DNA of 64,000 bases from Bugula neritina. Its lineage: Eukaryota; Animalia; Bryozoa. Made by a program: the position numbers and the translations under genes. Below, piece after piece: positions 2,419 through 63,933 of the stretch. The stretch's first letter is position 1, and the number at the start of each line of letters is the position of its first letter. Location of the stretch: assembly GCA_964035545.1 (NCBI GenBank), contig OZ037768.1:62001-126000 (forward strand), written 5' to 3'. The notes below the pieces were generated by a model that saw only the letters and a program-made list of their open reading frames with translations, did not search any database and had not been told where the DNA came from.

Positions 2419-5400
2419 ATGACATACACTGCACTTTTATCTAGGAGTACAGTAAATATTGTGTGTTACTTCCTCCTGCCAACGGTTACACTAGCTATAG
2501 CTATGCTGTCTACCTCTATGGACATTAACACCACGTCCACACTCCCTCCTTCTCCCAGCTGTTCTGCTCTATTTCTGGCCCGAACATTGCCATTGCCTAG
2601 TCAGTGTTATTTTTCTATCACTATGGAAATGGTCACCTTGACCTGCCCTAACCTCTCGGAGTTCCCCACCATATCACAGGAATACAGAGCGTGCATAACG
2701 CAGCTGTAAGTGTAGTGTATAACATACAACATTTTAGTAATATTATGTTACATATTATACAATATTTTAATAATATTATGTTACATATTATACAATATTT
2801 TAGTAATATTATGTTATATATTATACAATGATTTAGTAATATTATGTTATATAGTATGCTATATTTTAGTAATATTATGTTATATAGTATACTATATTTT
2901 AGTAATATTATGTTATATATTATACTATATTTTAGTAATATTATGTTATATATTATACAATATTTTAGTAATATTATGTTATATATTATACAATATTTTA
3001 GTAATATTATGTTATATATTATACAATGTTTTAGTAGTATTATGTTATATATTATACTATATTTTAGTAATATTATGTTATATATTATACTATATTTTAG
3101 TAATATTATGTTATATATTATACTATATTTTAGTAATATTAAAGATTGCCAGCGACCTTTAGGTGACCTCAAGGAACTACACATATCTCTCTACTCTAAC
3201 CTGCTTTCATTGTAAGTGTATATTTATATCTACTCTCTGACACATATATCTACTCTCTGACACATATATATACTCTCTGACACATATATATACTCTCTGA
3301 CACATATATATATACTATCTGACACATATATCTACTCTCTGACACATATATCTACTCTCTGACATATATATCTACTCTCTGGCACATATATCTACTATCT
3401 GACACATAAATCTACTGTCTGACACATATATCTACTCTCTGACACATATATCTACTCTCTGACACATATATCTACTCTCTGACACATATATCTACTCATA
3501 ATTGTAGAAGTATTACAAACTGTGGACTAACAAGTGTCGACTCAACAACTTTTATTTCAAATCGAGAATTAGAAAGCCTGTAAGTATACTACGTATATAC
3601 TCTTTGAGTGAGTACTAACTACTATAACATGAGTTATATACTCTTTGGGTGAGTACTTACTGTTATAACATTAGTTATATACTCTTTGGGTGAGTACTAA
3701 CTGTTATAACATAAGTTATATACTCTTTGAGTGAGTACTACCAATTATAACATGAGTTATATACTCTTTGTAGAGATCTGTCCAACAACCATCTGGAAGT
3801 TGTTAGTTATGACACAATATTTACAATCAGGAAGCCGCACTCGATGTGAGTTGGAACATATTTTACTCTTGAATTCATCCCTCCTTGTAATGATTGAACA
3901 GCTCTTCTCATATTTTACACTCTGTGCATTGATTTTCATCTTAGCAACTTGATGGAAAACCCTTTCGTCTGCAACTGCTCCATGGCATGGATGTCGACAG
4001 CATTGTCTTCGAATTTGAATTTTTCTAACATATTTGTTGGTTTCCCAAAATGCAATGGGACGATACATTTGAAAAATTTGACTCTACCAGAATGTAAAAG
4101 ACCAGACGTTAGTGTAACCCACGAATCACCGACCACCAATTTGTCTGCAGGGGCGGAGCTTACATTGTCTTGTTATGGGACCGGGTCCCCGCCTCCCCAG
4201 GTAAATACTCATCAGAATGATAAACAAGTCATTGCTGTGAATCTTAACCTTTTCTTAGTGGTTGACACTGATTGATTATTTATTGTGATAGGTAGTATGG
4301 TTGACAGAGGATTTAAACTCCTCGTTTACACTCTCTGGCGTGGAAACACAGAATCTAACTCTCCATATCACCAACATTTCAAAGGCAGATAATGGACGCC
4401 AATTAGCTTGCTATGCTAAAAATGTCGTCTTTCATAAGAGAGATACAGTCGTACTACAAATAAACAGTGAGTGTGATTAGCAATTAACTAGTTAATTACT
4501 GCTAGTTAGTTACTACTAGCTAGTTGCTAGTACTAGTTAGTTACTACTAGCTAGTTACTACTAGTTAGTTACTACTAGCTAGTTACTAGTAGTAGTTAGT
4601 TACTACTAGCTAGTTACTACTAGCTAGTTACTAGTAGTATTTAGTTACTATTAGTAGTTAGTTACTAGCTAGTAGTAACTAGCTAGTAGTAACTAACTAG
4701 TAGTAACTAACTAGTAGTAACTAACTACTAGTAATAACTGACTGGTAGTAATTAACTAGTTGCAGTAACAAAATTGAGTAACTGACTACCAGAGTTCAAG
4801 TAATATGCTATGTGGAGAACGAATAACAGTAGTATGTGGTAGTCATGTGGTAGTCATGTGGTAGTATGCGGTAGTATGCGGTAGTATGCGGTAGTATGCG
4901 GTAGTATGCGGTAGTATGCGGTAGTATGCGGTAGTATGCGGTAGGATGTGGTAGTATGCTGTTACACGGATATGATTTATTACCAAATCTTTTATACTTG
5001 TGATGGCATTTCTTTTTGTTTTTATAGTTGCTGTGAAAATCGAAAAGTTCACGTTTTTAAAAGACAAAGCCTGTCTAAATTATGTCGTATATGGAACAGC
5101 ACCCTTTCAAATGACCTTGAGCCTTCAAGGGTCATTGCTACAGATAAGTATGTTTTGCCTGTGTTAGTGACATGTAGATACTATGTGTCTACTATAGTAC
5201 TGTAGTAGTAGATACTGTGTGAATACTATAGTACTGTAGTAGTATATACTGTGTGAATACTGTAGTAGTATATACTATGTGAATACTGTAGTACTGTAGT
5301 AGTATATACTGTGTGAATACTGTAGTACTGTAGTAGTATATACTGTGTGAATACTGTAGTACTGTAGTAGTATATACTGTGTGAATACTGTAGTACTGTA

Positions 5401-8400
5401 GTAGTATATACTGTGTGAATACTGTAGTAGTAGATACTGTTGCAGGTGAACTGTTCTATGACAATGTATGTAACACCACTACTTGCCGCACGTATGAGTT
5501 TGACAAGAGTAAAGGGTGTCTGACATGGAAGGCGGGGATAGTCGGAGGCAGCTACATGATGAACGTGTCGAACAGATTTGGCTCAAACATAGCCTACGCG
5601 GATGTGTCAGGAAGTGACTCTAATGTCCATCCATCCAACAGCAATCTCCGCACACTTGACTTGGGAACAGACCGGGTGACTACTGCTCTTGTTGTGCATA
5701 CGACAGCAGGCCAGGTGGGTGACCAAGTTGTAACTAAATATATCCTTTGACAGCAAGTCATTTAGTATGTCAATTGAATGTATCTGTGGCAGTGGGGTGC
5801 AGGTGTGTGTCGTATGTTTCAGGTCTCCTATGTGGCCGTGGTGACACCAGTGGTTTCTATAGCACCGGTAATTGCTCTTCTCTGTGTAGCCTTCTACTGC
5901 AGGCACCGGGCACACAGGAAGAGGAAACAACTTGCTAGAATGGGTGAGTAATGGGGAGATAAGTCATATGAAACTAGTAGTATATAGTATAACATAGTAG
6001 TATATAGTATAACATAGTAGTATACAGTATAACATAGTAGTATATAGTATAACATAGTAGTATATAGTATAACATAGTAGTATATAGTATAACATAGTAG
6101 TATATAGTATAACATAGTAGTATATAGTATAACATAGTAGTATATAGTATAACATAGTAGTATATAGTATAACATAGTAGTATATAGTATAACATAGTAG
6201 TATATAGTATAACATAGTAGTATATAGTATAACATAGTAGTATATAGTATAACATAGTAGTATATAATATAACATAGTAGTATATAGTATAACATAGTAG
6301 TATACAGTATAACATAGTAGTATATAGTATAACATAGTAGTATATAGTATAACATAGTAGTATATAGTATAACATAGTAGTATATAGTATAACATAGTAG
6401 TATATAGTATATAGTATAGTATATAGTATAACATAGTAGTATATAGTATAACATAGTAGTATATAGTATAACATAGTAGTATATAGTATAACATAGTAGT
6501 ATATAGTATAACATAGTAGTATATCGTATAACATAGTAGTATATAGTATAACATAGTAGTATATAGTATAACATAGTAGTATATAGTATAACATAGTAGT
6601 ATATCGTATAACATAGTAGTATATAGTATAACATAGTAGTATATAGTATAACATAGTAGTATATCGTATAACATAGTAGTATATAGTATAACATAGTAGT
6701 ATACAGTATAACATAGTAGTATATAGTATAACATAGTAGTATATAGTATAACATAGTAGTATACAGTATAACATAGTAGTATACAGTATAACATAGTAGT
6801 ATATAGTATAACATAGTAGTATATAGTATAACATAGTAGTATATAGTATAACATAGTAGTATATAGTATAGTATAGTAGTATATAGTATAACATAGTAGT
6901 ATATAGTATAGTATAGTAGTATATAGTATAACATAGTAGTATATAGTATAACATAGTAGTATATAATATAACATAGTAGTATATAATATAACATAGTAGT
7001 ATATAGTATAACATAGTAGTATATAGTATAACATAGTAGTATATAGTATAACATAGTAGTATACAGTATAACATAGTAGTATATAATATAACAGAGTAGT
7101 ATACAGTATAACATAGTAGTATATAGTATAACATAGTAGTATATAGTATAACATAGTAGTATATCGTATAACATAGTAGTATACAGTATAACATAGTAGT
7201 ATACAGTATAACCCTAGTAAGCTTGTGTATCTCATTACAGAAGACAAAAGTTACGAGTTGTCTCCCCTAACAGAGTTACCTCCCATGACAGATAACCCTC
7301 ACTACCATCTCCTGTCTCAACAGGTTACAAAGAGTAAGTATTAAGCTCCCCTACAAGTCCAAATAGCGAGACATAAAACTAACTAGTGTGTTACAAGTGC
7401 TCATAGCTCCATCAAACTGCTAGACTAGATCTGCTTTTCATTGCAGAGCTGCGAATTATAGACTCGAATCAGCTAATATTCATCAAGGAGCTGGGAGAAG
7501 GGGCATTTGGCAGAGTCTACCTGGGATCCTGTCTTAACCTGTTGACAGGTAAAGCAGTGACTGTAACAGCTCTTCATCTCAACACTGCCGTATCTCTCTT
7601 ACGTCACGTATCATCATTTTATTGATTTTCAAACTTCAGTGGCCGATAGCTTCTTTTTGTTTAGAGTAGATGGGAACCCAATATATGGGGCAGTTACTGT
7701 ATGTCAATGTACATGTATGTGTGTGTATGTGTGTGCGCGTGTGCGTGCGTGTGTGTGTGTGTGCGTGCGTGTGTCTGTGTGTGTGTGTGTATGTGTGTAT
7801 AATATATGTGCGTGTATAATATATGTGCGTATAACTTAGGGGATGAGAGAACAATGGTGGCCATTAAGACTCTCAAGACTTCAGTCACTGAAGAGGCAAT
7901 GAAAGACTTTGAGCACGAAGCGGAGCTGATGACAGACATGAGTCATGAAAACATCGTGTCTTTCTACGGCATCAGTTATAACGGAGAGAATCTTATGATG
8001 ATATTTGAGTACATGGAGAATAAGGACCTGAACAACTACTTGAGGTAGAGAGATATACTATATATAGTGTTAGTATACTGCTACTGGTATAGATATATAC
8101 TATATAGTGTTAGTATACTGTTACTGGTATACTATATACTACATAATATTACTATATTATGTATTGCTAGGAGCAACGGGCCGGACGCATCGTGTCTGGG
8201 ATACTCCACATGGAAAAGTTCTCCACTCTTGATGATTCAGTTACTCTACATATCACAGCAAATAGCAGCAGGTAAGTGAAGGTGTTATTACAGGTGTGTT
8301 ATGTTACAGGTGTGTTATGTTACAGGTGTGTTGTGTTACAGGTGTGCTATGTTACAGGTGTGCTATGTTACAGGTATGAAGTATTTGGCTGAAAGACACT

Positions 8401-9560
8401 TCGTGCACAGAGATTTGGCCACAAGGAACTGCTTAGTGGGAGAGAAGTTGACTGTTAAGATTGGTGATTTTGGTATGAGCAGGGACGTGTACAGCACAGA
8501 CTACTACAAGGTAAGTATAGTAAGTACATTCACGACATGGTCAGTAGTACAGTGTATATCTAGAGATGCATACAAGTTTGAAGATGGTGTTATTCAGGTC
8601 GGAGGTCAGACTATGCTGCCCATCAGATGGATGCCTCCAGAAAGTGTATTATACAGAAAATTTACTATTGAGTCAGACGTGTGGAGCTTTGGTGTGGTTC
8701 TGTGGGAAATATTCAACTATGGCCGCCAGCCGTGGTTTGAATTATCCAATATGGAGGTAAAAGGTCATATAGATATTACTTGTAGGTCATATAGATATTA
8801 CTTGTAGGTTATATAGATATTACTTGTAGGTCATATAGATATTACTTGTAGGTCATATAGATATTACTTGTAGGTCATATAGATATTACTTGTAGGTCAT
8901 ATAGATATTACTTGTAGGTCATATAGATATTACTTGTAGGTTATATAGATATTACTTGTAGGTTATATAGATATTACTTGTAGGTTATATAGATATTACT
9001 TGTAGGTTATATAGATATTACTTGTAGGTTATATAGATATTACTTGTAGGTTATATAGATATTACTTGTAGGTTATATAGATATTACTTGTAGGTCATAT
9101 AGATATTACTTGTAGGTCATATAGATATTACTTGTAGGTTATATAGATATTACTTGTAGGTTATATAGATATTACTTGTAGGTTATATAGATATTACTTG
9201 TAGGTTATATAGATATTACTTGTAGGTTATATAGATATTACTTGTAGGTTATATAGATATTACTTGTAGGTTATATAGATATTACTTGTAGGTTATATAG
9301 ATATTACTTGTAGGTTATATAGATATTACTTGCAGGTCATAGAGTGCATCAAAGAAGGACGAGTGCTGAGTAAGCCAGCTGACTGCACAGATGAACTTTA
9401 CCAACTCATGTTGTGCTGCTGGAAAACCCAGCCAGCTGATCGAGTGAGCATGTGCAAGATGTACGACATCCTGTCAGACTACCTGGCACCCGGCAGCCCT
9501 TATAACAACAACAGCAGAGCCGTCAGCAACAAGGAATCTCCGTTTCCTCTCCTAACATGA
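2419..9560 (+). CDS. NTRK: Trk-family neurotrophin receptor tyrosine kinase (signal peptide, Cys/LRR, 2 Ig, TM, NPxY, kinase), 16 coding exons
   Basis: Phase-compatible exons: 2419-2705, 3134-3211, 3508-3579, 3774-3845, 3945-4200, 4292-4466, 5028-5147, 5446-5714, 5823-5943, 7241-7333, 7447-7548, 7840-8044, 8171-8271, 8374-8510, 8598-8756, 9336-9560. Motifs: [68 protein letters not shown], and the Trk activation loop [29 protein letters not shown]. The start codon is the least certain part. Confidence 0.93.
2725..3141 (+). repeat. 33-bp array copying the Trk exon 2 acceptor plus the first 8 exon nt
   Basis: Unit ..TATTTTAG|TAATATTATGTTATATATTATACAA; the real junction is TATTTTAG|TAATATTAAAG at 3133/3134. 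Confidence 0.9.
3226..3497. repeat. 20-bp intronic minisatellite
   Basis: Unit ACACATATATCTACTCTCTG. Confidence 0.9.
4480..4790. repeat. Fold-back (inverted) microsatellite
   Basis: TAGTTAGTTACTACTAGC-type units switch to their reverse complement GCTAGTAGTAACTAACTA near 4668. Confidence 0.75.
5975..7212. repeat. 20-bp intronic minisatellite, about 62 copies
   Basis: Unit TATATAGTATAACATAGTAG; it fills the Trk intron after the TM exon. Confidence 0.95.
8286..8376 (+). repeat. 16-bp AG|GT-containing array, 6 copies
   Basis: Unit GTTACAG|GTGTGYTAT; the last copy is the real acceptor (8373/8374). Confidence 0.9.
8762..9341 (+). repeat. 22-bp array copying the last Trk acceptor, about 26 copies
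   Basis: Unit TAGATATTACTTGTAG|GTYATA; the real junction is TTACTTGCAG|GTCATAGAG. Confidence 0.93.
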
Positions 9561-10039
9561 AGTATAAGACATCTGGTAGTCATATGGAGAACTGTGTACT
9601 ATAGAGAGATATGTTTATATTAAGAACTGTGTACTATAGAGAGATATGTTTATATTATCTGGTAGCCATATTAAGAACTGTGTACTATAGAGAGATATGT
9701 TTATATTAAGAACTGTGTACTATAGAGAGATATGTTTATATTAAGAACTGTGTAGTATAGAGAGATATGTTTATATTAAGAACTGTGTACTAAGTATTTA
9801 TGCAATGGGTATGAATTATTTGTACAGTTATATTTTGTTCATATTTTCAGATGACATAACATAATATTTGTTTTGAACCAGTCCTGGTGTTATATTTAAC
9901 TAAAGATGTATAATGATACTCTTGTATATAAATAATCATTACAACAGCATCTGCTGCTTCACTTGTTTACCATATTTGGCACTTAAAACGGGAGATGAAT
10001 ATATAGTAAACTACTAACATTACCATATTACCCCAAACC

Positions 10040-10592
10040 CCTCACTGTTTCATATACTTCCTATAGTGTAGCTAAGTCCCTCCCCCTTACTGTATCATAT
10101 ACTTTCTATAGTGTAGCGAAGTCCCTCCCCTTACTGTTTCATATACTTCCTATAGTGTAGCTAAGTCCCTCCCCCTTACTGTATCATATACTTCCTATAG
10201 TGTAGCGAAGTCCCTCCCCTTACTGTTTCATATACTTCCTATAGTGTAGTGAAGTCCCTCCCCTTACTGTTTCATATACTTCCTATAGTGTAGCTAAGTC
10301 CCTCCCCTTACTGTTTCATATACTTTCTATAGTGTAGCTAAGTCCCTCCCCTTACTGTTTCATATACTTTCTATAGTGTAGCTAAGTCTCTCCCCTCACT
10401 GTTTCATGTACTTCCTATAGTGTAGCTAAGTCCCTCCCCTTACTGTATCATATACTTCCTATAGTGTAGCTAAGTCCCTCCCCTTACTGTATCATATACT
10501 TCCTATAGTGTAGCTAAGTCCCTCCCCTTACTGTTTCATGTACTTCCTATAGTGTAGCTAAGTCCCTCCCCTCACTGTTTCATATACTTCCT
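10040..10592 (-). repeat. 44-45-bp array copying the DSCC1 last codons and stop, about 12 copies
   Basis: The minus-strand unit contains AGGAAGTATATGAAACAGT(G/A)A, i.e. RKYMKQ-stop. Confidence 0.9.
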
Positions 10593-12640
10593 AGTGAAGT
10601 ATTTGACTCCAGAACTGCTGAAAGACCTGGCATGTTTCATAACCAACACACTAACTGTCAGTTTACCAACTGTCAATGGTTCTATATACGGAGTTATTTC
10701 CTCCAATGACCAGCGATCTTTAGAATCAAAGAGTTCTTCAAACCTCACTTTGATGTCTTCAGATAAGTTTTGAACAGGAAAATACCTGATAACTGCAGGC
10801 TGAGTTTCTGACTCCAGGAAGGCAATACCTGAGAGATACACAACATAGTCTACTAGATTCACTTAAACATCATGCTTATCTCTTCACTTAAACATCATGC
10901 TTATCTCTTCACTCAAACATCATGCTTATCTCTTCACTTAAACATCATGCTTATCTCTTCACTTAAACATCATGCTTATCTCTTCACTTAAACATCATGC
11001 TTATCTCTTCACTTAAACATCATGCTTATCTCTTCACTTAAACATCATGCTTATCTCTTCACTTAAACATCATGCTTATCTCTTCACTTAAACATCATGC
11101 TTATCTCTTCACTTAAACATCATGCTTATCTCTTCACTTAAACATCATGCTTATCTCTTCACTCAAACATCATGCTTATCTCTTCACTTAAACATCATGC
11201 TTATCTCTTCACTTAAACATCATGCTTATCTCTTCACTTAAACATCATGCTTATCTCTTCACTTAAACATCATGCTTATCTCTTCACTTAAACATCATGC
11301 TTATCTCTTCACTTAAACATCATGCTTATCTCTTCACTTAAACTGCTTATTGACTGTAGACAAACCTCTGAGCTGAGTGAGTTGCGTCATCATTCCTTCT
11401 GGTACACTGTCTTTCCAAGCAGTCAAAAACTCTTCCAAGTTAAATTTTGTAGTTGGTCTGAGTAACATTTCAGCAAAAAATCTACAGACCTATACCAAAG
11501 AAAAAGTTTAAATAACAATCAATTTAGAACCCAAATGGATTAAAGTATTGCACATGACCAAACTTAGCTAGCAAACTATGACAGCGTAAGGGTATTACAG
11601 ATATTCACCTTCTCTTCATCAAGCTGCCAAATATCACTGTGAGGGTTGGCAGGATCTAAAGAAGATCCATAGGATTGTAGAGTGTGGTCAATTATTTCCC
11701 TGGGGTATAATTCCTCGAGAGTTGCTAACGTTTCTAGGCGGCTAAAAGAGCCAAAATGCCATGAATTTTCTTCAATAAGTGCAGAAATAGAAGAAATGAT
11801 TCGAGCCAAATAATCAAAATCAACCATTCGCACGTAACCATTTAATTCTACAATGTTTAGAGAAGACAAGGCACACACAATCTCAGTGTTACTAGCGGGT
11901 AAAAGAGAAACAAGGTCATTCATGGTTAATTTTCCAAATACATCTGCTTCGTGTTCTGGACCATCATAAGAAGTTGGGCCAAGTAGCTTCATTATTGCAT
12001 TAATTCGTGGCTTTATAGGCCGCAGTTCGAGATAACAATGGCAAGTTGAGCTAACGCGTATCTTGCTCAAACGAATATGAGACTTAGACGGAGTCACTGC
12101 TAAAGTATTACTGCCACATTCTGCATGACTATTCGCCTGAACATTCCCAGCGACACCATCATTATCCTTATCATGATCACGATAATCAGAATCCTTAGAC
12201 TTGTCAGTGCCATTATCATTATGATTACGTCTAGCATTTAGTTCTCTATCAAAAAGAAAATTTTTATCAACTTTTGACTGAGACTGAGCAGGCAAATCAA
12301 AGTTTGCCCCAGAAACCAAAAGCAAAGCATTGGATATTTCCGCATCCTTAACGTCAAATGTTGCTTCATCAGTACACAAAACACAATTCTCGGAGTTTAA
12401 TCCTTTCAAAATCAACTTTCCACCATTTTCTAAATGATGAAGAGTAGAAGGGTTGAGTTCCAGCAATTTTAACCCATCTGGTTGGAGATTATTATCAAAG
12501 TAAACTTGTTGAACATCAGGCTTCAAGTCATTTATATCAAGTTTTGCAAATTTTAAAATTTTCTTTACGACCTCAGTTTGCTGAAGTGTATGATTTTCCT
12601 TGTTCATATGCGATGAATAATCTTGTTCACCAAGCTCCAT
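10572..12640 (-). CDS. DSCC1: Sister chromatid cohesion protein DCC1 (Ctf18-RFC subunit), 3 exons
   Basis: Exons 12640-11609, 11489-11366, 10828-10572. Motifs KLLEL..LENGGKLILKG..NCVLCTDEATFDVKDAEISN, FLTAWKDSVPEG and RFEELF..KDRWSLEEITPYI. Start taken at MELGEQ (12640); the upstream ORF extension is probably UTR. Confidence 0.9.
10858..11349. repeat. 25-bp intronic minisatellite, about 19 copies
   Basis: Unit CACTTAAACATCATGCTTATCTCTT; it fills DSCC1 intron 2. Confidence 0.95.
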
Positions 12641-13916
12641 CTTACTCTGATGCGATTGCTGTGAATATGCGGTAGGAAATTCCAGTTTTGTTGCCGCGCT
12701 GAAATTAGCGCACGATTCAAAGCCTCTGGTAAACTTGAGTGCAACGAAAAACACAGATAACATTAGTGTACACAAAGAAATGAGACACTGACTGTTCAGA
12801 TTTTGGAGCACTGAATTAGGACTTCTGTAGTACAGAGCAATGAGTTGAAGATTAATGCACCACTCTGGTTTAAAGAACTGTGCTTTATTGCTACATATTA
12901 TATGATTTTAGACTGTTGTGGTACAGACTACAGAGTTAATTAAAAATGATGTAGCACTTCAGATGCAGCAATATTATAACTGTTGACCGCAGGCTGTGAT
13001 AATTAGTTTAGCGGATCAATTATTGACATTTCGCATTGTTTTAGTCCTAGTGCAGTCCTAGACAGGTATAATATACCAATGTGTGCGTAAAAGTTGCTTG
13101 ATACGGCACACAATGTGAGGTCACTGAGTGCAGTGGTGCAGTGTCTCAAGTTAGGGTTAAAGTTCGATCCATAAGCACTGCACTCAGCGTCTCCAGATAT
13201 CTTGCTGCATCTAGCGGTGCCCTGTATATACAGTCTCGTTACAGAAGTCATTGATACATAAATATTTACATTTCAGAGACAGAGGCGCTTGGAACACAAG
13301 CCCGCTACCTTTTTTTACAGTTTACTGGATACCAGCTACAAGCTTCTTATTTATTGCTATGATTGTCTTAGTTGATATTTTCCTCCACAAAATCATTTAA
13401 TTTCTTCTCTATTCTATTAATAGTTGACATTATTAGACTCTTGAACTTGACAATATCATAATTATTGATTAGAAATAGAAATACTATTGCTATTACTATT
13501 AGTATTACATTTACTATTACTACCAGTATTAGTATTACTATCACATACTCATACTGATAGTGATACACTTACAGTGATACTGATACTTGATAACTTATAC
13601 TTATAGTGATACTGATACTGTTAGTGTCATAGACCATAGTCAATGTCATACCCATAGTCAATGTCATAGCCATACTCAACTGATACTGCCACTGATATTC
13701 ATATTGATAGTGATACTCATACACTTGACCTTGTACTCGGACTCCACTACTTGTAGTCTCAATTGGGCAATTAGAATTGGTAATTACTAATAGTAATACT
13801 ATTAGTATTAGTATACTATTAATATCACTATCACGATTAAACAGTTAAACTTAATGTTAGTATCGCAACTAGTACTAATACTACACGTTCTAGTAAGTGA
13901 ATTTTCAATTTCAAAG

Positions 13917-16900
13917 ATGTTTCGAGTATACGCAATAATACCAGCTGCTGGAATGGGTCAGCGACTTAACTCCTACCCAGCTAAGCAGTTTCAGCTAATT
14001 GAAGACAAGCCGGTCATTTCTTATACTATATCCTCATTTGAAAGGTGGGTATTACAAATACAATCACAATGACTATTAGTAATATAATAATAATATTATT
14101 ATAGTAATAACAAAAACCTAATCTGTACTGCTACATAGTTGCTCAAACTCTAAGTCTCACTCAGTCACTACAACTCCTACTGACCAAGCAAGACTATACT
14201 TATATTTACAATGACAATCACTAGGAGTAAGATTATGACTATAATCGTAATCAATATCATAATTGTAATCATAGTGATAATGGTACTCAGTCTCATCTAC
14301 ACTTCTCTTCTTACTCACACTATGCTAGTTAATATTATATTCATACTGATACCATGATACTGATGTGCTCACCTTCATTTAAGTGACTGCTACACTACCA
14401 GTATTTCAGCATTTTCATGCTAATACTATTTTTGTGTACTTTCTTGTGTATATTTTTTTACTTCATCTTGAGTTATCATGTTTTGTCTTAGTACTACTAA
14501 TTATCGTAAGATGTAATATTTACACCATGATATTATTTTAGTTAGATCTAATATTTGTATTGTATAATTATTAAATAAGATTTGCTCTTTTTTACAACTT
14601 GTAGGTATTTATTTTGCTCCAACCGCAATACAACCATTTTTATTTCTTGTCTGAAAGTAAAATGTTACAATTTTGCCACTGGAGTCCAGGGTTATGATTG
14701 CAGAGTGTTAGTTTCTGTCTTTAGCATGCTGTGGATGGAGAAGGTCATAGTGGTGGTGTCGGTGGAGGAGTTTGACAGGATGAGGAGGATATTGAAAGAC
14801 CACAATCACTCAGAGAAAGTGGTGCTGGTTCCAGGGGAGCCAACACGTCATGGCTCTATATTCAACGGCATTAAATACATGAAGTCTGGACACAGTGAGT
14901 GTCTCTATGGATGTGTATCTAATTAAGGGTTACTTGCTGTAGACATGTTAGTGGGCGGGACATGTTAGTGGGCGGGGCGTGTTAGTGGGCGGGATATGTT
15001 AGTGGAAGGAACATCTTAGTGGGAGGGGCATGTTAGTGGGAGGGACATTTAGTGGGCGGGACGTGTTAGTGGGCGGGACATGTTAGTGGGAGGGACATGT
15101 TAGTGGGCGGGACGTGTTAGTGGGAGGGACATGTTAGTGGGCGGGGCGTGTTAGTGGGCAGGACATGTTAGTGGGCGGGACGTGTTAGTGGGAGGGACAT
15201 GTTAATGGGAGGGACTATACTGACTAGAGTATTATATTGTGCAGATGATGTCCCCCCAGACATTGTGATTGTCCACGATGGATGTAGAATGTTTGTGGAA
15301 GATTCTGATCTCAACACTATTGCTACTGAAGCGTTCAAGAACGGGGCAAGTGTTTAGCGTATTTACATAATGTACATATTCACATAATATAATATACACA
15401 TATAGTATATAGTATAATATACACGTATAGTATAGTATACGGTATAGTGTATAGTATTATATACACGTATAGTATAGTATATTCGTATAGTATAGTATAC
15501 ACGTATAGCATATAGTATAATATACACGTATAGTATAGTATATAGTATAGTATATAGTATAGTATATAGTATCTGTATATAGTATACACGTATAGTATAT
15601 AGTATAGTATACACGTATAGTATATAGTATAATATACAGTATAGTGTATAGTATAATATACACGTATAGTATATGGTATTTTAGGCAGCAGGGTTCACCA
15701 GGCCACTGATATCTACAGTAGTTTCCAAAGACAAGGACAGTTATTTGCAGGATGTGTTTGATAGATCTCTTTGTTATGCCAGTGAAATGCCTCAAGCTTT
15801 CAAGTTTGAGTTCATTAAAGAGGCATATGAGTGTGTGAGTCATAATCATATGTCATATAATATAATATATATAATACGACATATAATATAACATATATAA
15901 TATAACATATATAGTATAACATATAATTTAACATATAATATAACATATATAATACGACATATAACATATGGCATATATAATGTAACATATATAATATACA
16001 TATAATATAACATATATAATATACATATAATATAACATGTATAATATATCATATATGCATATAGTACGACATATATGTGAAATTTGCAGGCGAGCAAAGC
16101 GGACATCGAACACGGAACTGAGTGTCTGTTACTGGTGAAGAAACATTGTCTGGGAGCTCGTGTTAAATTAATAGAGGGGGCGGAGCATCTCTGGAAGATC
16201 ACGTATCAGCGAGATTTATACTCGGCAGTTGGTGTTGTTAAAGGTAGTGCTTACTATACACTGTATACTATATACTGTATGCTATATACTGTATGCTATA
16301 TACTGTATGCTATATACTGTATGCTATATACTGTATGCTATATACTGTATGCTATATACTGTATGCTATATACTGTATGCTATATACTGTATGCTATATA
16401 CTGTATGCTATATACTGTATGCTATATACTGTATGCTATATACTGTATGCTATATACTGTATGCTATATACTGTATGCTATATACTGTATGCTATATACT
16501 GTATGCTATATACTGTATGCTATATACTGTATGCTATATACTGTATGCTATATACTGTATGCTATATACTGTATACTATATACTGTGTACTCTATACTGT
16601 ATACTATATACTGTATACTATATACTGTATACTATATACTGTATACTGTATACTACACACTGTATATTATATACTATACACTGTATACTAGTACACTGTA
16701 TACTATACACTGTATACTATATACTGTATACTATATACTATACACTGTATACTATATACTACACTGTATACTATACACTATATACTATATACTATATACT
16801 GTATACTACACTGTATACTATATACTATATACTGTATACTACACTGTATACTTACTATACACTATATACTCTATACTATACACTGTATACTACACTGTAT

Positions 16901-18519
16901 ACTATACACTGTATACTATATACTGTATACTATATACTGTATACTGTATACTATATACTGTATACTACACACTGTACACTATATACTGTATACTACACAC
17001 TATATACTACACACTATATACTACACACTATACACTGTATACTACACACTGTATACTGCACACTATATACTATATACTATATACTACACACACTGATGTA
17101 TTGGTAATCAATACTGCATTATTTTACTAACTGACATCCTTTTCACGTCAACAATGAAGTCATTGATTGAACTATTATTGATCATTTTCTGGGCTACTAT
17201 ATCCGCACACCACAAACTCACACTCACTGTGAGATGAAGCAATGATTCCTGCCTCTATTTCAGAGAACAACAGCCACATGGTGTTTGTGGGGCCTGAGGA
17301 GTTGACCTGGAGAAACCTGCTGCATGCTGTCACAAGGTCAAAGGTAGGTCACAGAGTCATGAATACAGCGCTAACTGTAGAGAGTGAGTAGTATTGAGTA
17401 TAGAGTGAGTAGTGCTGTTAGTACAGAGTGTAGTAGTACTATTAGTACAGAGTGTAGTAGTATTATTAGTATACAGTGTAGTAGTACTATTAGTATAGAG
17501 TGTAGTAGTATTATTAGTATACAGTGTAGTAGTATTATGAGTACACAGTGTAGTAGTACTATTAGTATAGAGTGTAGTAGTATTATTAGTACAGAGTGTA
17601 GTAGTACTATTAGTATAGAGTGTAGTAGTATTATTAGTACAGAGTGTAGTAGTACTATTAGTACACAGTGTAGTAGTATTATTAGTACAGAGTGTAGTAG
17701 TATTATTAGTATAGAGTGTAGTAGTATTATTAGTACAGAGTGTAGTAGTATTATTAGTATAGAGTGTAGTAGTATTATTAGTACAGAGTGTAGTAGTATT
17801 ATTAGTATAGAGTGTAGTAGTATTATTAGTACAGAGTGTAGTAGTACTATTAGTACACAGTGTAGTAGTAGTATTACTCTGTTGACATAATTTCAGGATT
17901 CCTGTACAAGTGCGACTGTTAGTGCAATTCCGAAGCCCACAATAAGGAATGTGATACTATGCTACAATCGCTACAGCGCGTCTTCCCTCACCATGGATAC
18001 AAAGGAAGTTGTGGAATACTTTGCTAAATTTTGTATGAAAAACTGCACAATTATAATCATAGTGGCCACATCCAAGATGGCCGAAGCACTGACTGAAATG
18101 AGAAATCAAGTGCAGCTAATAGCAAAAAATGTCTTAGATAAAAGTGTTGTTGTTTACGGGATATGTACTGGGAAGGTGATTAATATATGTACTTACTCTG
18201 TAATATATGTACTTACTCTGTAATATATGTACTTACTCTGTAATATATGTACAAGTTGCAACCTAATATATACTCACAATGTAATATATATACTTACACT
18301 GTAATATATATATATATATACTTTGTAATATATGTACTTACTCTGTAATATATATATACTTACTCTGTAATATATGTACTTACTCTGTAATATATATATA
18401 CTTACTCTGTAATATATATATATTTACAGGACCCGGTTATCAACGTCATCAGTAAAACTATAGCATCTGTAATCAGAGACAGAAATAGAGATCTTACGGG
18501 GCAGCTCTTCATCTTCTAA
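13917..18519 (+). CDS. CRPPA: CDP-L-ribitol pyrophosphorylase A / ISPD, 8 exons
   Basis: Exons 13917-14044, 14725-14894, 15245-15345 (GC donor), 15685-15834, 16090-16243, 17264-17343, 17897-18175, 18430-18519. Motifs AIIPAAGMGQR..PAKQF, TRHGSIFNG, IVHDGCR, ASEMPQAF, GTECL..LWKITYQRDLY, and C-terminal IASVIRDRNRDLTGQLFIF. Confidence 0.92.
14942..15215 (+). repeat. 17-bp G-rich intronic array, about 16 copies
   Basis: Unit GTTAGTGGGMGGGACAT. Confidence 0.9.
16255..17095. repeat. 14-bp TATACTGTATGCTA array grading into degenerate 7-bp units
   Basis: Direct inspection; ISPD intron 5. Confidence 0.9.
17410..17875. repeat. 27-bp intronic minisatellite
   Basis: Unit AGTACAGAGTGTAGTAGTATTATT with variants. 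Confidence 0.85.
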
Positions 18520-18931: not shown

Positions 18932-21900
18932 TCAAAACGTACTCTGGTTTAATATAAATAGTCTGCTCTCCTCCCTCTTTATCCATCTAAGTAGTTTATA
19001 TACAGTAGAGATAGCAGTTTTCTTATCCGAGAGGGGACTGAAGACAGCGTATAGTTCGAACCCCTGCGTTATCTACATACAAGTACACAACAATTAAGTA
19101 CTGTAAGTCACTGTAAGTCAAAGTAAATACTGTAAGTCACTGCCAACTGGAGTGTGTTACACAACAGATACTGTCAGCTTACCCAGCCAAGGATGCTTTC
19201 GTATGCATAGGTTTGGTAGAGAATGCGTAGAGGTCTGTGTGCACAATGCATTCTGCCATGGATGCTCATGTAGAGGTCTTGTAGTCTGTGTCTCTGCACA
19301 TCCGTCACGTACGGAGCAGTCGGCTCGGGGCTGGTCATGTGACCACAACTCTTAGACTTATAGACAAAGTGCCACAATTCCGGCATTCCAACCTACACAC
19401 ACTTACACTGTACATACATAGTACATACATTGTACATACACTGTACTTCCACTTACATTGTACTTACACTGCACATACACTTACACTGTACATATACTTA
19501 CACTGTAAATACACTTACACTGTACATATACTTACACTGTACTTACACTGTACATACACTTACACTGTACTTCCACTTACACTGTACATACACTTACATT
19601 GTACTTACACTGTACATACACTTAAACTGTACATACACTCACCTGTTGTGTTGAGTAGCCATGGGAACTGACAGACTCTGCTATGGACTGTAAACAGCTG
19701 TATCTATTCAGTCTCTAAAATATATCATGTTACACTTACACTACATAGAGATGTACTTACACCTACATAGAGACGTACTTACACTACATAGAGACGTACT
19801 TACACTACATAGAGATGTACTTACACCTACATAGAGATGTACTTACACTACATAGAGATATACTTACACCTACATAGAGATGTACTTACACCTACATAGA
19901 GATGTACTTACCTCAACTATTCGAGTCTTACAGTCGGACAGAACGGGGAAATGCTCGCTATCAACTGTGAGAAGCAGCAGGCAGGTGTTGCAGGGTTCAT
20001 CTAAATACGAGATGTAGGCGTACAGGAATCCGCTGTAACGTAATATATGCTCAGAATAACGTAATATATACTCAGAATATTGTAATATATACTCAGAATA
20101 ATGTAATATATACTCAGAATATTGTAATATATACTCAGAATATTGTAATATATACTCAGAATAACGTAATATATACTCAGAATATCGTATTATATACTCA
20201 GAATAACGTAATATATACTCAGAGTAACGTAATATATACTCAGAGTAACGTAATATATACTCAGAATATCGTATTATATACTCAGAATAATGTAATATAT
20301 ACTCAGAATATTGTAATATATACTCAGAATAATGTAATATATACTCAGAATAATGTAATATATACTAGGAATATCGTAGTTAGCATATTTATACTCAGAA
20401 TGAGGTATTTAGTATATTCATACTCAGAATAAGGTGAAGGGATAGATAAGCAGACGTTACCTGCTATCAAACTTGGGTAAGCACACAGGAAGCCATGATT
20501 CAGCAGTTTTGAAGGAGTCAGATGATTGCACCATGTTGAGCAAAAGGTGAAGGTCAAGTGAGTGTAAAATAAACTTTTTCATTCTCACTGAGCTGACTAA
20601 TTGATTATGACTAACAACGACAGCAAACACCAAGTCCTGTAACGACAGCAAACAAGTATTACTTGAGGATATTGTGCAACAGAGAGGAGTTAGTGTAACA
20701 GAGTGAAGACACTGGGAGAAGTAACAGGGGGATATAGATACAGTGAAGACACTGGGAGAAAGCTACTATAGAGTAGAGCCACACCTTGACCTTGCTACAG
20801 CACTGGACTATAGTTTGAGTGAACGTGTCTCGGACACTGGACTGTAAGGGGAGACACCTGACCGCTCCTAGTATGTAGCTAGGATCCCTGTCTATCACAT
20901 TGAGTAGGTTATCTATGAACTTTTCTGTGCCAGACAGCATACGTCGCAGGTCAAAGTTCACTCTGTCTTTGAATATCTTGTTGAGTGAGGTGAGAGTGAG
21001 AACACAGAGTATCTGGTTGTAGACATAGTTGAGTTGAATGTGTAAGTGTCTTACTGATTCTTCCCCGCTACAACACGTGACTTACTATAACTTACTATAA
21101 CATCTTACTTACTATACCATGTAGCTTACTATAACATGTAACTTACTATAACTTACTATAACATGTAACTTACTATAACTTACTATAACATGTAACTTAC
21201 TATAACTTACTATAACATCTTACTTACTATAATGTGTTACTATAACTTACTATAACATCTTACTTACTATAATGTGTTACTATAACTTACACTTATTATT
21301 TAAGTTTCACTCATCATAACATATACTTATATGATGTGCATTGACAGCAATTTACAGATAGCATACTGACTGTAAATAATAACCCACCTGGTTACAGCAA
21401 CTAATGTCAAATGCTCTTTTATTAGGAACACAAACCGCCGATCACCAGCAACTATCATTTTCAGAACGTCCCTTTGACCCCCGTGAGCAATGAAGGATAC
21501 TAAGGCTTGCATGACTCCGTACACCGTAACCAACTTTTCCTCATTCCCGTATCTAACAGCAAACCGCGTAGAGATATACCTACTGAGAAACCTGGATATT
21601 CTTTATGTTCACAACTCACACCCACAACTCACACCCACAACTCACACCTACAACTCACACCCACAACTCACACCCACAACTCACACCTACAACTCACACC
21701 CACAACTCACACCCACAACTCACACCCACCTGCTGTATATCGGTTTGCCTGACTCGCTCAACACAAACACATGTTTCCGTTTGTTCTTCCAATCGTCGCT
21801 CTGAACATACTCGAGATCGGAGTCGGACTCTGATATGAGTGAATCGCTCCTCATTATCTTCAACTTCTGCATCGTATCAGTGATAGTGGAAGACTGGCAA

Positions 21901-47247: not shown

Positions 47248-56763
<9,516 letters not shown>

Positions 56764-57214
56764 CTCTATATCTGCCAAGCATAGGTATCACACATAAAAT
56801 ACTTGTTTATAGACAAACTATGCATCAGTGTTCGGGTACAACAATGTACCATGTGCTGAGTGTACAGGTACCTACCATGTGCTGACTATACAAGTACCTA
56901 CCATATGCTGACTATACAAGTACCTACCATGTGCTGAGTGTACAGGTACCTACCATATGCTGAGTGTACAGGTACCCACCATGTGCTGAGTGTACAGGTA
57001 CCTACTTTATGCTGAGTGTACAGGTACCTACCTTATCCTGACTATACAGGTACCTACCATGTGCTGACTAAGTGTAAACATTAGTTTGGAAAGTAAGCTA
57101 TAATTTGTCTGGTTACAGATATTTCTATCAGTATAGCTAAGACTACCAAATAAACACCGTATGTACACCACAACGTCTCTGGGGAGCAAAGAATCTCTAG
57201 AGCTACGATACTTG

Positions 57215-59913: not shown

Positions 59914-62900
59914 ATGACTGACTCTGATGTTTTGCCACTTCCTCTCACGGATGACGACGACTTTTTCTCAGATCTTAGTGGAGATGAAACGTATATCAAT
60001 ATGCGACGACCGATGGCGATTGGCAAAGGGAGCAAGCTGATAATTGATCATCAACCTGACCATGATCACAATATAAATATTAGTGTAGGAAACAGTATGA
60101 CTGTGCGCAACCATAATGATGCTGGTCATAGTGATATGCTTGCTACTCAAACAGTGAATGCATCAAATGTTATTTCATATGATAACCACAATGTTGGGTC
60201 ATTAGCTGGAAGGACTAATCCTTTCAGCTTCAGTACACCAAGGTCGCGGAATGTCAATGCGAATCACACTCACAGTGACAGTGCGAGGAATAGTCATAGT
60301 GATAGTGCTAGTCACACTCGAAGCGAAAATCATGATTCGGAAATTACGGTTGGGAGCCACAGAGACGAACATTCTCACACAAAATCCCAATCTGGTGTTT
60401 CTGGCAATGATTCTACTAGTAATTACTCTCATGTTCACAAGCAAACTAACTCTCACAGCTCTTCAAATAACAGTCACAGTGCGTCCACTGCAACATGGGA
60501 CCATTGCCATGTCCCCCTCAAGCCGAATGATAACACAGTTAGAAATCAACTGATAGTTATTTCAATTTTTACTACAGTGTTTGGAGTTGCGGAAACTGTA
60601 GGTAAGCATATTAAAACTTTCTTTTAAATCTAACAGTAACAGCTGGTATCAAATTTATTTTATGGACTTTAAGTTTATCACCCATCGATGACAATGATGA
60701 TCATCATCATGGCTGTTATTATTAGCTTATCATAAGACATGATGAATTAGGATCAGCATGATCGTGAGACTGAGTGAATTAGGATCAGCATGATCGTGGA
60801 ACTGGGTGAATTAAAATTTATTGGTGTATCTAATAACTTGTGTTATTCCTTAGGTACAACTTGGTCAAAACTTATTTCTCTTAGGATGACCTTCAACCTT
60901 ATTGCTAAAAACACGATAACCATTCGTGGGTATATGAGATTGGTTCTAATCAAATGAATTCAAACGGTACAGCCATGTTTTAAAATTTACTGATAGTTTA
61001 GAGCTATTTTTGTGGAAAGCTCGTGCCTCACAGGCCACTGTTGACTGTAGTGTTGATGGCTTTATTGTGAAAGCAGTTGTTTAATAGTAAGGCTAATTTG
61101 TTATGTAATCTTATACCATACATTTTACATTGTATTGTAGTAATTCAATAGCGGTCAAGCAATTGGTACTGGGTATGTAAAACCTTCTGCCTCCACCAGG
61201 AATCGAACCTGGAACCTCCAACTTTCCAGCTTAAGATAATTACCCTTTCAATTAATCGAATGGATCAGCAAATAATACAGTTTAATATTTTAGCTCACTG
61301 TTTACTAGGGTATCTCTATCAACTGCATCTAAACTAATTCACAAACTTCTCTCAAGTTACCTAACTCAAGTTACCTATCTCAAGTTACCTAACTCAAGTT
61401 ACCTAGCTCAAGTTGCCTATCTCAAGTTACCTATCTCAAGTTACCTATCTCAAGTTACCTAGCTCAAGTTGCCTATCTCAAGTTACCTAACTCAAGCTAC
61501 CTATCTCAAGTTACCTAACTCAAGCTACCTATCTCAAGTTACCTAACTCAAGTATTTCAGTTGTTGGGGTCTTGAAATAATGACAGCCAATGATTATATA
61601 CTCTGAAGATTTTGCAATTTTCTATTTGGGATCAACTGATCATACTAAAGTCTTTATCTAAATTCTAGTACAAAGTATAATGAAGTTAATTATATTTCAA
61701 TTTAGTGATATACTAATAAGCACTCCCACACGCAGGTAGAAATACTAAACTCTTATCAGTGTCCTTCGGCCAGCACTGATAGCAGATTCCGTGTGACCAA
61801 CAGCAGCTGTTGATCAGCTCCTATCAGCTGCTATCAGCTGCTACCAGCACTAATCTATTAACATAGCTCCATATAAACCCTACTGGGTGTGTGACATGTG
61901 TAAACACTAAACATAGCAGTGTTATATAACTATAGCTAGACATAGCAATATAGTATTGTGTTGTATAATATAGTATTGTATTGTATAATATTGTATAATA
62001 TTGTATACTGTCCACCCAGAGGCTGTATACTCTGGTAGCATAGTATAATATTGTATACTGTCCACCCAGGGGCTGTATACTCTGGTAGCATAGTATAATA
62101 TTGTATACTGTCCACCCAGGGGCTGTATACTCTGGTAGCATAGTATAATATTGTATACTGTCCACCCAGGGGCTGTATACTCTGGTAGCATAGTATAATA
62201 CTGTATACTGTCCACCCAGGGGCTGTATACTCTGGTAGCATAGTATAATACTGTATACTGTCCACCCAGGGGCTGTATACTCTGGTAGCATAGTATAATA
62301 TTGTATACTGTCCACCCAGGGGCTGTATACTCTGGTAGCATAGTATAATACTGTATACTGTCCACCCAGGGGCTGTATACTCTGGTAGCATAGTATAATA
62401 CTGTATACTGTCCACCCAGGGGCTGTATACTCTGGTAGCATAGTATAATATTGTATACTGTCCACCCAGGGGCTGTATACTCTGGTAGCATAGTATAATA
62501 CTGTATACTGTCCACCCAGGGGCTGTATACTCTGGTAGCATAGTATAATACTGTATACTGTCCACCCAGGGGCTGTATACTCTGGTAGCATAGTATAATA
62601 TTGTATACTGTCCACCCAGGGGCTGTATACTCTGGTAGCATAGTATAATATTGTATACTGTCCACCCAGGGGCTGTATACTCTGGTAGCATAGTATAATA
62701 TTGTATACTGTCCACCCAGGGGCTGTATACTCTGGTAGCATAGTATAATACTGTATACTGTCCACCCAGGGGCTGTATACTCTGGTAGCATAGTATAATA
62801 CTGTATACTGTCCACCCAGGGGCTGTATACTCTGGTAGCATAGTATAATATTGTATACTGTCCACCCAGGGGCTGTATACTCTGGTAGCATAGTATAATA

Positions 62901-63933
62901 CTGTATACTGTCCACCCAGGGGCTGTATACTCTGGTAGCATAGTATAATACTGTATACTGTCCACCCAGGGGCTGTATACTCTGGTAGCATAGTATAATA
63001 TTGTATACTGTCCACCCAGGGGCTGTATACTCTGGTAGCATAGTATAATATTGTATACTGTCCACCCAGGGGCTGTATACTCTGGTAGCATAGTATAATA
63101 TTGTATACTGTCCACCCAGGGGCTGTATACTCTGGTAGCATAGTATAATATTGTATACTGTCCACCCAGGGGCTGTATACTCTGGTAGCATAGTATAATA
63201 TTGTATACTGTCCACCCAGGGGCTGTATACTCTGGTAGCATAGTATAATATTGTATACTGTCCACCCAGGGGCTGTATACTCTGGTAGCATAGTATAATA
63301 TTGTATACTGTCCACCCAGGGGCTGTATACTCTGGTAGCATAGTATAATACTGTATACTGTCCACCCAGGGGCTGTATACTCTGGTAGCATAGCTATTGG
63401 CACAGATGTTATGCACTTGGCCAGTGACCTCCTCTCCTTTGTCATCAGTCTCATAGCAGTCTACCTGGCTAAGAAACCTCCCACTGCTAGATTTCCTTGG
63501 GGATTCCATAGAGCAGGTAACTCCTAACTACTAATATACCGTATTCACTATATTCACTGTCCCTAGCGTGTGGGAAGTAGCAGTATCTAGGTATGTTGTG
63601 TTACTTGATGTCTACAGCGAGACTATGTTGTGTTACTTGATGTCTACAGCGAGACTATGTTGTGTTACTTGATGTCTACAGCGAGACTATGTTGTGCTAC
63701 TTGATGTCTACAGCGAGACTATGTTGTGTTACTTGATGTCTACAGCGAGACTATGTTGTGCTACTTGTTTGTGCAGAGGTGCTTGGTGCCCTACTCAGTG
63801 TGTTTGTCATATGGGTGGTGACGGGCATACTCGTCTACCTGGCTGTGGAGAGGATCATCACTAAAGACTACGACAGTCTAGAACCTTCCACTATGCTCTA
63901 CACTTCTATAGCTGGTGTCATCTTCAACATTAT
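59914..63933 (+). CDS. SLC30A: SLC30/ZnT2-like cation diffusion facilitator (zinc transporter), 5' partial; continues beyond the window
   Basis: Exons 59914-60601, 63370-63516, 63777-63933 join in phase: ..FGVAETVG|AVYSGSIAIGTDVMHLASDLLSFVISLIAVYLAKKPPTARFPWGFHRA|EVLGALLSV. This has the TM2 HxxxD motif and the CDF signature GFHRAE. Confidence 0.92.
61188..61230 (-). pseudogene. tRNA-derived fragment (T-arm/B-box), possibly a SINE remnant
   Basis: Minus strand reads GGAGGTTCCAGGTTCGATTCCTGGTGGAGGCA: CCAGG/CCTGG stem around a TTCGATT loop. No 5' half is recognisable. Confidence 0.4.
61993..63393 (+). repeat. 50-bp array copying the ZnT exon 2 acceptor plus 24 exon nt, 28 copies
   Basis: Unit TATAATAYTGTATACTGTCCACCCAG|GGGCTGTATACTCTGGTAGCATAG; the last copy continues into exon 2. 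Confidence 0.96.
63592..63767. repeat. 32-bp intronic minisatellite, about 5 copies
   Basis: Unit TATGTTGTGTTACTTGATGTCTACAGCGAGAC; it ends about 9 nt before the acceptor at 63776. Confidence 0.9.

Follow-up and report, generated by a model that had tools for sequence, protein, structure and literature searches.

The 64,000-nt stretch of Bugula neritina DNA analysed here (the window) holds eight genes, identified exon by exon with Pfam: a Trk-like receptor tyrosine kinase (RTK) gene, DCC1, ISPD, MON1, a CD225-family gene, a collagen XV/XVIII-like gene, methylmalonyl-CoA mutase (MMUT) and ZnT (Table 1). The Trk-like label is taken from the Watersipora orthologue. Eighty coding introns were placed; all have GT/GC-AG ends, and the reading frames are open.

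Table 1. Genes, tandem arrays and an array-free intron in the window (arrays as unit length x copy number)
Positions	Strand	Feature	Details	Basis
2419–9560	+	Trk-like LRR-Ig receptor tyrosine kinase gene	16 coding exons	
2724–3141	+	RTK intron-1 mirage	33 nt x12.7; acceptor 3133 with 8 exonic nt; decoy use adds 11 aa in frame	
3846–3944	+	RTK intron 4	99 nt, array-free; 25-nt segment bounded by TTGAA at 3869–3873 and 3894–3898	
8288–8375	+	Array flush with acceptor 8373	16 nt x5.5; exonic part just 2 nt; not a clear mirage	
8762–9341	+	RTK mirage	22 nt x26; acceptor 9335 with 6 exonic nt; unique intron remainder 5 nt	
10038–10593	-	DCC1 array	44 nt x12.6; covers the final 23 coding nt plus the stop codon, enters 3′ UTR; non-splice control	
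10571–12640	-	DCC1 gene		Pfam, intron model
10858–11343	-	DCC1 intron-2 array	25 nt x19; private in genome; identical unit in diverged individual	
14704–18519	+	ISPD-like gene	5′ end not placed	Pfam, intron model
18950–22638	-	MON1 gene	3′ end not placed	Pfam, intron model
19394–21729	-	MON1 introns	Arrays flush to donors 19642, 19911, 21729 and acceptors 19393, 20033, 21068; units without exonic bases	
25388–26620	+	CD225-family gene		Weak Pfam match, E 0.003
27880–45994	-	Collagen XV/XVIII-like gene	Thyroglobulin repeat and endostatin domain	Pfam, intron model
29315–29820	-	Collagen mirage	16 nt x32; donor 29803 with 7–13 exonic nt	
37635–39185	-	Array in collagen XV/XVIII-like gene span	22 nt x70; one exact 34-nt copy at C4:3,415,482	
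39988–40394	-	Collagen mirage	35 nt x11.6; donor 40363 with 31 exonic nt	
47248–56763	-	MMUT gene	RNA contig matches five introns	Pfam, RNA contig
51219–52877	-	MMUT intron-10 array	16 nt x~100; siblings at C4:290.3–291.3 kb and C4:306.0–306.3 kb	
54439–54697	-	MMUT mirage	21/26-nt units; donor 54678 with up to 19 exonic nt; in-frame decoys +21, +42; exon-adjacent site in RNA contig	
55045–55212	-	MMUT intron 6	40-nt array, donor-like copies within; another individual's is shorter by 61 nt; splicing from the exon-adjacent donor	
59914–63933	+	ZnT cation-efflux gene	Extends past window edge	Pfam, intron model
61947–63393	+	ZnT mirage	50 nt x28; acceptor 63369 with 24 exonic nt; in-frame stop on decoy use	

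Tandem arrays occupy 51 of the 80 coding introns and 25,333 of 35,213 intron bases (72%), with at least one array per gene. This bears out the initial annotation, which described arrays filling introns across all eight genes and repeat-free introns of about 85–120 nt: array-free introns have a median of 110 nt, and 23 of 29 are within 79–125 nt. Its term ‘intron-specific’ is too strong, as 18 arrays sit outside coding introns, one of them across the DCC1 stop codon. Coding introns are nonetheless about five times denser in arrays than intergenic gaps (P ~2e-6): 3.7–4.6 per collapsed kb, vs 0.2–0.7 in divergent 5′ gaps (n=3) and about 2 in 3′ gaps. An assembly artefact was considered and is rejected, since array depth in unitigs of the likely source run is 130–500, relative to 109 in single-copy DNA, and other individuals have arrays at the same places.

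The arrays have not simply been added to introns. When collapsed to a single unit, 30 of 50 array introns fall under 79 nt, the length of the smallest repeat-free intron, and therefore arrays have replaced unique intron DNA. The length of the unique flanks does not drop with rising copy number (rho 0.08), thus erosion does not simply follow array size.

Six arrays have units that contain 6–31 exonic nt and so span an exon-intron boundary, compared with 0.08 cases under an exon-swap null; units of the remaining ~50 arrays do not. Seven junction copies had been proposed. Six stand (3133, 9335, 63369, 29803, 40363 and 54678), and in all six the decoys score at the level of real sites. The two exonic bases (GT) at 8373, however, are at chance level. 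Arrays also had been described as starting exactly at donors 19642, 19911, 21729, 44056 and 54311; they start 0–2 nt away, but at 44056 and 54311 the GT is outside the consensus unit.

The junction-copying repeats are ‘mirages’ of the amphioxus type. As presented in the accounts of the amphioxus Adh3, globin, TnC and PGBD5 genes drawn on here, mirage minisatellites are locus-specific, span exon-intron boundaries at either end, carry AG/GT copies, vary in length between haplotypes and leave splicing normal, with units of 10–72 bp in Adh3 (PMC3087553; PMC3902484). The six window arrays share the boundary-spanning unit and the copied GT/AG signals. They differ in being from another phylum and in making up about one-tenth of the many arrays present, a share no higher than random expectation; the array population as a whole, moreover, is tied to chromosome ends. 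In the human F7 gene, the first unit of a 37-bp VNTR in intron 7 spans the exon-intron boundary, and identical pseudo-donors downstream are silent while the upstream site wins (PMC1557585). MMUT donor 54678 behaves likewise: a spliced RNA contig, which represents the dominant isoform only, takes the exon-adjacent site despite in-frame decoys. F7 is a single locus with donors only, whereas in the window, which belongs to a genome of short introns, acceptors form banks too, of up to 27 copies. Exon-adjacent splicing at the other five mirages is supported by reading frame and Pfam continuity rather than RNA; a full-length Bugula RTK protein from RNA was looked for and none was found, which leaves the acceptor mirages without direct RNA proof.

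The origin of one array can be followed at RTK intron 4. In another individual, the 25-nt segment between its TTGAA repeats is amplified 6.2-fold with all flanks retained, a birth placed mid-intron, 23 nt inside. The claim that locally templated amplification inflates introns is upheld by this birth from the intron's own sequence. The case, one in number, shows the single-copy ancestor lying between short direct repeats (TTGAA...TTGAA), as in the Haber-Louis or microhomology-mediated tandem duplication model, where a single-copy segment so flanked gives rise to an array and such events are depleted from coding DNA (PMC13167724). The likeness, which is one of sequence, extends to the retained flanks and to the depletion from coding DNA; the differences are that only one birth is seen here and that arrays expand up to 100 copies. 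As support for microhomology duplication the case is suggestive only, because 5-nt pairs are common (1–8 spacings per array-free intron). Individuals differ in array copy number and units. The length differences are seen in neighbouring non-mirage arrays; contigs break inside the mirage array itself.

Array load follows chromosome position. On the 24.8-Mb chromosome, the tandem-repeat fraction is 0.48 in the window (0.1 Mb from the tip), 0.37 at 0.3 Mb, 0.15 at 0.7 Mb and 0.10 at 1.2 Mb; it is 0.00–0.07 at 2–23.5 Mb, one satellite block aside, and 0.47 at 24.25 Mb. The correlation with distance to the end is -0.77 (rho), based on one chromosome and 19 usable 10-kb samples. Look-alike arrays occur on all nine chromosomes, and 22 of 35 loci with look-alike arrays are within 1 Mb of an end, with 3.1 expected. 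Predicted introns carry arrays in 11 of 19 cases at ends and 0 of 16 in the interior, the interior introns having been predicted by a home-made parser with a precision of 0.79. Array-free introns have a GC content of 0.37 at ends vs 0.32 inside, and GC3 in the window (0.45) is modestly above that of the interior (0.41). The enrichment at chromosome ends is that of subtelomeric minisatellites, and GC agrees as a proxy for recombination, in place of a recombination map. Human subtelomeric minisatellites are recombination-associated tandem repeats at chromosome ends. In Timema, chromosome ends have the highest repeat load and GC, in association with recombination, and units of 20–60 bp are mostly confined to a single array and chromosome-specific (10.64898/2026.09.22.753450). 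The ends of B. neritina chromosomes similarly are higher in repeat load and GC, and their units are of a like kind; unlike in Timema, the zone is gene-dense, arrays form most of the intron DNA, recombination is judged by the GC proxy, and copying of arrays from intron to intron in cis is seen.

This copying concerns the 16-mer of MMUT intron 10, which makes two further arrays ~180–190 kb away at the same chromosome end. The siblings carry its rare variants, one as a 104-nt exact stretch and the other as a 20-nt double variant. Relative to the host intron, a sibling array is oriented in the same sense as the MMUT array. Around the sibling arrays, neither common flanks nor terminal repeats were observed. 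The initial annotation had found no shared family among units. This is true of most: unit similarity reaches at least 0.7 in just 9 of 1,653 pairs, seven of them involving one low-complexity 14-mer, and four further units that were searched are private. It does not hold for the 16-mer with its three arrays, and the units have a common composition, TpA-rich and AA/TT-poor. Two other units each have one exact 34–36-nt copy elsewhere on C4, and a 10-mer unit matches three C2 arrays at 91–93%. A hairpin or palindrome mechanism was tested as well: units have double the frequency of palindromic hexamers found in unique DNA. Dinucleotide-preserving shuffles give the same count (69 vs 69.7) and equal folding energy, and the excess was therefore dismissed as an independent signal.

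The observations are probably best explained by microhomology duplication, expansion by subtelomeric recombination and filtering by selection on exons. The setting would be a chromosome-end zone with a high rate of minisatellite formation and expansion. Segments of 10–50 nt in any non-coding DNA may be duplicated in place between short direct repeats, as seen once in RTK intron 4. Unequal exchange or gene conversion near the ends would then expand, homogenize and trim the arrays, whose polymorphism and homogenization are observed. The collapsed lengths suggest that unique intron DNA, deletable because the array provides spacing, is lost up to the point where array and splice signals adjoin and selection would halt the process. 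Random duplication in introns of ~100 nt should often cross a junction, as the null counts given below indicate, and such a duplication would survive if the exon-adjacent copy keeps the site, which leaves a mirage pointing into the intron. Occasionally, ectopic templated repair may copy an array to another intron at the same end, the MMUT 16-mer being the one clear case. Since the spliceosome keeps using the exon-adjacent site, at least at the one mirage donor with RNA, arrays can be looked at as tolerated filler.

It had also been proposed that arrays are seeded from splice junctions, perhaps in a splicing-coupled manner: the splicing reaction or a spliceosome-bound R-loop would expose junction DNA and template its duplication. 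The six true junction copies are in line with this, as are ten arrays flush with donors (-3 to +5 nt) vs 3.4–4.1 under an ancestral-length null, the near-exon position of long-intron arrays (8 of 13 are no more than 50 nt from an exon, against 3.3 expected; P ~0.005, post hoc) and the Watersipora orthologue, where three of four arrays are within 50 nt of a donor. Nevertheless, 6 of 57 arrays span a junction where random local duplication predicts 7.6–21.3, a number at or below every null tried, and the donor-flush count is not clearly above the collapsed-intron null (P 0.04–0.29). Furthermore, the observed birth was 23 nt into the intron, interior introns are spliced yet array-free, and the array over the DCC1 stop codon is at a place without splicing. 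Splicing-coupled seeding, which fails the check put forward in the initial annotation, is thus improbable. Because junction copies are no commoner than chance, the arrays look like a by-product of a recombination zone rather than a splicing-driven system. The interpretation of the initial annotation therefore survives for locally templated amplification and fails for junction seeding, and its null model of random slippage with selection on exons was essentially right, with the addition that chromosome position sets the rate. That decoy banks are kept by selection to supply alternative splicing or new introns is the least credible reading. Decoys are in frame at RTK 3133 (33-nt steps) and MMUT 54678 (21 and 42 nt), and there is a proposal that mirages give rise to introns (PMC3087553), but at least two strong decoys are found in only 8 of 50 array introns (antisense control: two donors, two acceptors), arrays turn over between individuals, and the main MMUT transcript is spliced at the authentic site. 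‘Banks of decoys’ describes those eight introns, although the sole bank with RNA goes unused in the dominant isoform.

That the arrays are fragments of a dispersed transposon or satellite family is very unlikely. The three arrays of one unit, the exact copies on C4, the C2 matches and the common composition would fit. Yet a dispersed family or introner would have one unit with shared ends at many loci, and what is found is a single three-array mini-family with unshared flanks, amid private and dissimilar units, six of which, the mirage units, come from their own exons. A refinement that is compatible with the preferred explanation has end instability joined by a transcription or gene-body bias, where breaks or repair tracts, for example tracts at points where homology between diverged alleles ends, favour transcribed exon-adjacent DNA and introns gain arrays faster than intergenic DNA does. 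Uniform duplication alone fails to explain the intron-versus-gap density, the near-exon position and the donor-flush excess over the ancestral-length null. The first two argue for such a bias, as do the sense orientation of the sibling 16-mer array and the divergence between sampled individuals, which are 97–98% identical in exons and 93–94% in introns. On the other hand, the divergent gaps are three only and have constrained promoters and recent insertions (one, of 465 nt, is absent from another individual), and what look like long introns may be short ones enlarged by later insertions, or may contain exons that were missed. The bias is rated as doubtful.

Under the preferred explanation of duplication, end recombination and selection, the repeats that copy junctions are an oddity already known, present here as a statistical by-product. 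New are the positional load, the birth in another individual, the replacement of unique intron DNA and the sibling arrays of MMUT intron 10; the literature collection searched yielded no paper that deals with bryozoan intronic minisatellites. The origin of mirages was left open in the amphioxus account as drawn on here (PMC3087553), and the B. neritina genome provides an answer tested against nulls, a driver in chromosome position and births that are polymorphic. It is also a natural test bed where exon and intron definition can be compared, as its introns are short and its acceptor banks reach 27 near-identical copies, next to in-frame donors. As a tentative proposal, repair in transcribed genes at bryozoan chromosome ends might routinely copy minisatellite tracts from introns of the same end into exon-proximal intron DNA. 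If so, a sizeable share of the ‘private’ arrays would be imported, units would come to share the TpA-rich composition, and all that is left of an intron would be its splice signals and an array now needed as a spacer. The array copied between unrelated introns on one chromosome end represents a measurable trace of ectopic repair.

Tandem repeats called by TRF make up 47.7% of the window. Arrays are found in 51 of the 80 coding introns (60 arrays) and cover 72% of intron bases; 18 more lie outside coding introns, and array-free introns have a median length of 110 nt. The eight genes were annotated via reading frame, with gene identity confirmed by searching each exon separately, and all 80 coding introns have GT/GC-AG ends. 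The assembly was built from PacBio long reads at QV 53.7 (PMC11480708). The arrays are real DNA: in unitigs from the likely source run depth rises over the array, and arrays are present in other individuals with differing copy numbers.

Seven sites had been named at which the unit copies the junction with its exonic bases (termed a mirage in amphioxus). Six stand, each with 6-31 exonic bases; that at 8373 has only 2. An exon-flank swap control gives 0.08 junction-copying units by chance vs the six seen. The five arrays described as flush with a donor start 0-2 nt from it.

The proposal that arrays are seeded from splice junctions does not survive comparison with a short-intron null. Each unit was placed uniformly in its own intron, junction-spanning placements being permitted if a working site remained; strictness took four levels, and introns were given either their collapsed length or one no shorter than that of array-free introns. 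Junction-spanning arrays number 6 of 57 vs 7.6-21.3 expected over all settings, i.e. no excess. Donor-flush arrays number 10 vs 5.5-8.2 (collapsed length) or 3.4-4.1 (ancestral length), and spanning and flush arrays together 23 vs 14.5-32.3. The shift from spanning to flush matches what array ageing would produce: the exonic portion of a unit could not keep pace as the array homogenises, and unique sequence in the intron would erode. Such erosion is indicated by the 30 of 50 introns that collapse to <79 nt, shorter than any array-free intron (minimum 79 nt). In RTK intron 15, 5 unique bases are left. One of the arrays outside coding introns spans the stop codon and last 23 coding bases of DCC1 and continues into the 3′ UTR, and therefore one-sided spread away from coding DNA is possible without splicing. 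A junction-directed or splicing-coupled system is not supported.

Array density per collapsed kb is 3.7-4.6 in coding introns, 0.2-0.7 in divergent 5′ gaps and about 2 in 3′ gaps, and in long introns 8 of 13 arrays lie ≤50 nt from an exon vs 3.3 expected. Promoter constraint, recent insertions or exon-edge-biased repair could each account for this excess. On the basis of a single sampled chromosome, a single RNA test and an inferred link to recombination, our verdict is that these are genuine, densely packed arrays of an ordinary type, namely subtelomeric minisatellites, of which six are mirages. These six behave like amphioxus mirages in the features open to test. The parts to follow are the gradient towards chromosome ends, the snapshot of an array birth and the copying of arrays.

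Banks of decoy splice sites were also proposed. By a weight matrix trained on these very introns, at least two decoys of real-site strength occur in only 8 of 50 array introns, and the idea does not extend to the remainder. RNA evidence for MMUT consists of one 2,326-nt spliced contig from a separate study. It joins at the exon-adjacent donor 54678, despite two in-frame decoys, at +21 and +42, whose scores reach that of the real donor; in intron 6, 211 nt are removed, the length predicted with the exon-adjacent donor. The donor choice in this contig agrees with human F7, where identical downstream donors are silent (PMC1557585), and with amphioxus mirages (PMC3087553; PMC3902484). Low-level decoy use may occur at MMUT donors, as contigs lose rare isoforms.

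The Darwin Tree of Life assembly comprises 216.00 Mb in 320 scaffolds plus the mitochondrion, with chromosome 4 at 24.8 Mb (PMC11480708). The window lies 0.06-0.13 Mb from the end of this chromosome (C4, 24.795 Mb). In twenty 10-kb samples along C4 alone, the repeat fraction is 0.37 at 0.3 Mb, 0.15 at 0.7 and 0.10 at 1.2, stays at 0.00-0.07 over 2-23.5 Mb apart from the sample at 15 Mb, which holds a 20-nt satellite, and is 0.47 at 24.25 Mb, near the opposite end. Introns predicted by a small parser (precision 0.79, leave-one-gene-out) carry arrays in 11 of 19 cases at the ends vs 0 of 16 in the interior. Array-free introns have a median of 143 nt and GC of 0.37 at the ends vs 333 nt and 0.32 in the interior; GC3 falls from 0.57 in samples from the ends to 0.41 in the interior, the window having 0.45. 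Genome-wide, 22 of 35 loci resembling window arrays lie ≤1 Mb from an end vs 3.1 expected, presuming that contig order is chromosome order. In Timema, chromosome ends are a joint peak of repeat load, GC and recombination (10.64898/2026.09.22.753450); by analogy, the Bugula array load may be tied to recombination. On small contigs of the assembly (e.g. C33, C66, C105, C176), dozens of kinase matches continue across in-frame TAA/TAG stops, a sign that the unplaced scaffolds may include a cobiont with the ciliate code.

Arrays were said to share no unit family. This holds for four of eight units searched genome-wide, which are private. Two have one exact 34-36 nt copy each at another C4 site, and a 10-mer matches three arrays on contig C2, possibly by convergence. 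The MMUT intron-10 16-mer does form two further arrays, both on C4 (290-291 kb and 306 kb); the search gave none on any other chromosome. The 306-kb array is likewise intronic, within an unrelated gene, and has the same sense orientation. Three variants of the unit and an exact match of 104 nt are common to it and the window array; its flanks are unit-like, and its outer sequence is not shared. The 290-kb array has a 20-nt double variant in common with the window. Judged from sequence, a tract of several units was probably copied in cis among the three. Units have a base composition in common (TpA 0.18 vs 0.10; AA/TT 0.04 vs 0.084), and this fully accounts for their palindromes.

Contigs L023 and L024, from another Bugula individual, span RTK introns 2-6. 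There intron 4 holds a 25-nt × 6.2 array; in the window this intron is array-free and has the single-copy state, with the unit 23 nt into the intron between two TTGAA repeats. Every flank was retained at birth, which fits the Haber-Louis/MTD model (PMC13167724). In intron 3 of L023 a unit variant has spread across copies, and the intron 6 array is 134 nt vs about 300 nt between individuals. The Watersipora RTK orthologue keeps the order of exons 2-13; its introns are longer and hold four clear arrays with unrelated units. Between the Bugula samples (window vs L021, L023 and sequencing run X14), exons diverge by ~2-3% and introns by ~6-7%, which is consistent with cryptic lineages.

Coordinates of mirages and side observations (window positions unless another sequence is named)
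Position	Feature	Reading
3133, 9335, 63369, 29803, 40363, 54678	splice sites with junction-copying units	mirages
13358-13822	465-nt insertion, missing in another individual (L021); degenerate 6-nt AT-rich repeats, likewise at 24124-24232 and several interior loci	probable dispersed element
15346-15684	ISPD intron, GC-AG, array-filled	
20615-20654	~26-nt two-copy duplication across the MON1 intron-4 acceptor (20637), under the TRF threshold	nascent or decayed mirage
44057-44242	N-terminal thyroglobulin type-1 repeat, collagen XV/XVIII-like gene	
46062-46159	87-nt intron, array repeating the donor motif; excluded from counts (putative UTR exon)	probable collagen 5′ UTR intron
54458-54555, 55046-55192	low-depth RNA-run contigs over MMUT intronic arrays, ~1-5% of exon depth	retained intron, pre-mRNA or DNA
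L023:270-616	347-nt insertion in the RTK intron-3 array, absent from the window; inverted ends ~14 nt, TAA target duplication	MITE-like
C4:15.00-15.01 Mb (sample L013)	whole 10 kb a degenerate 20-nt satellite	candidate centromere
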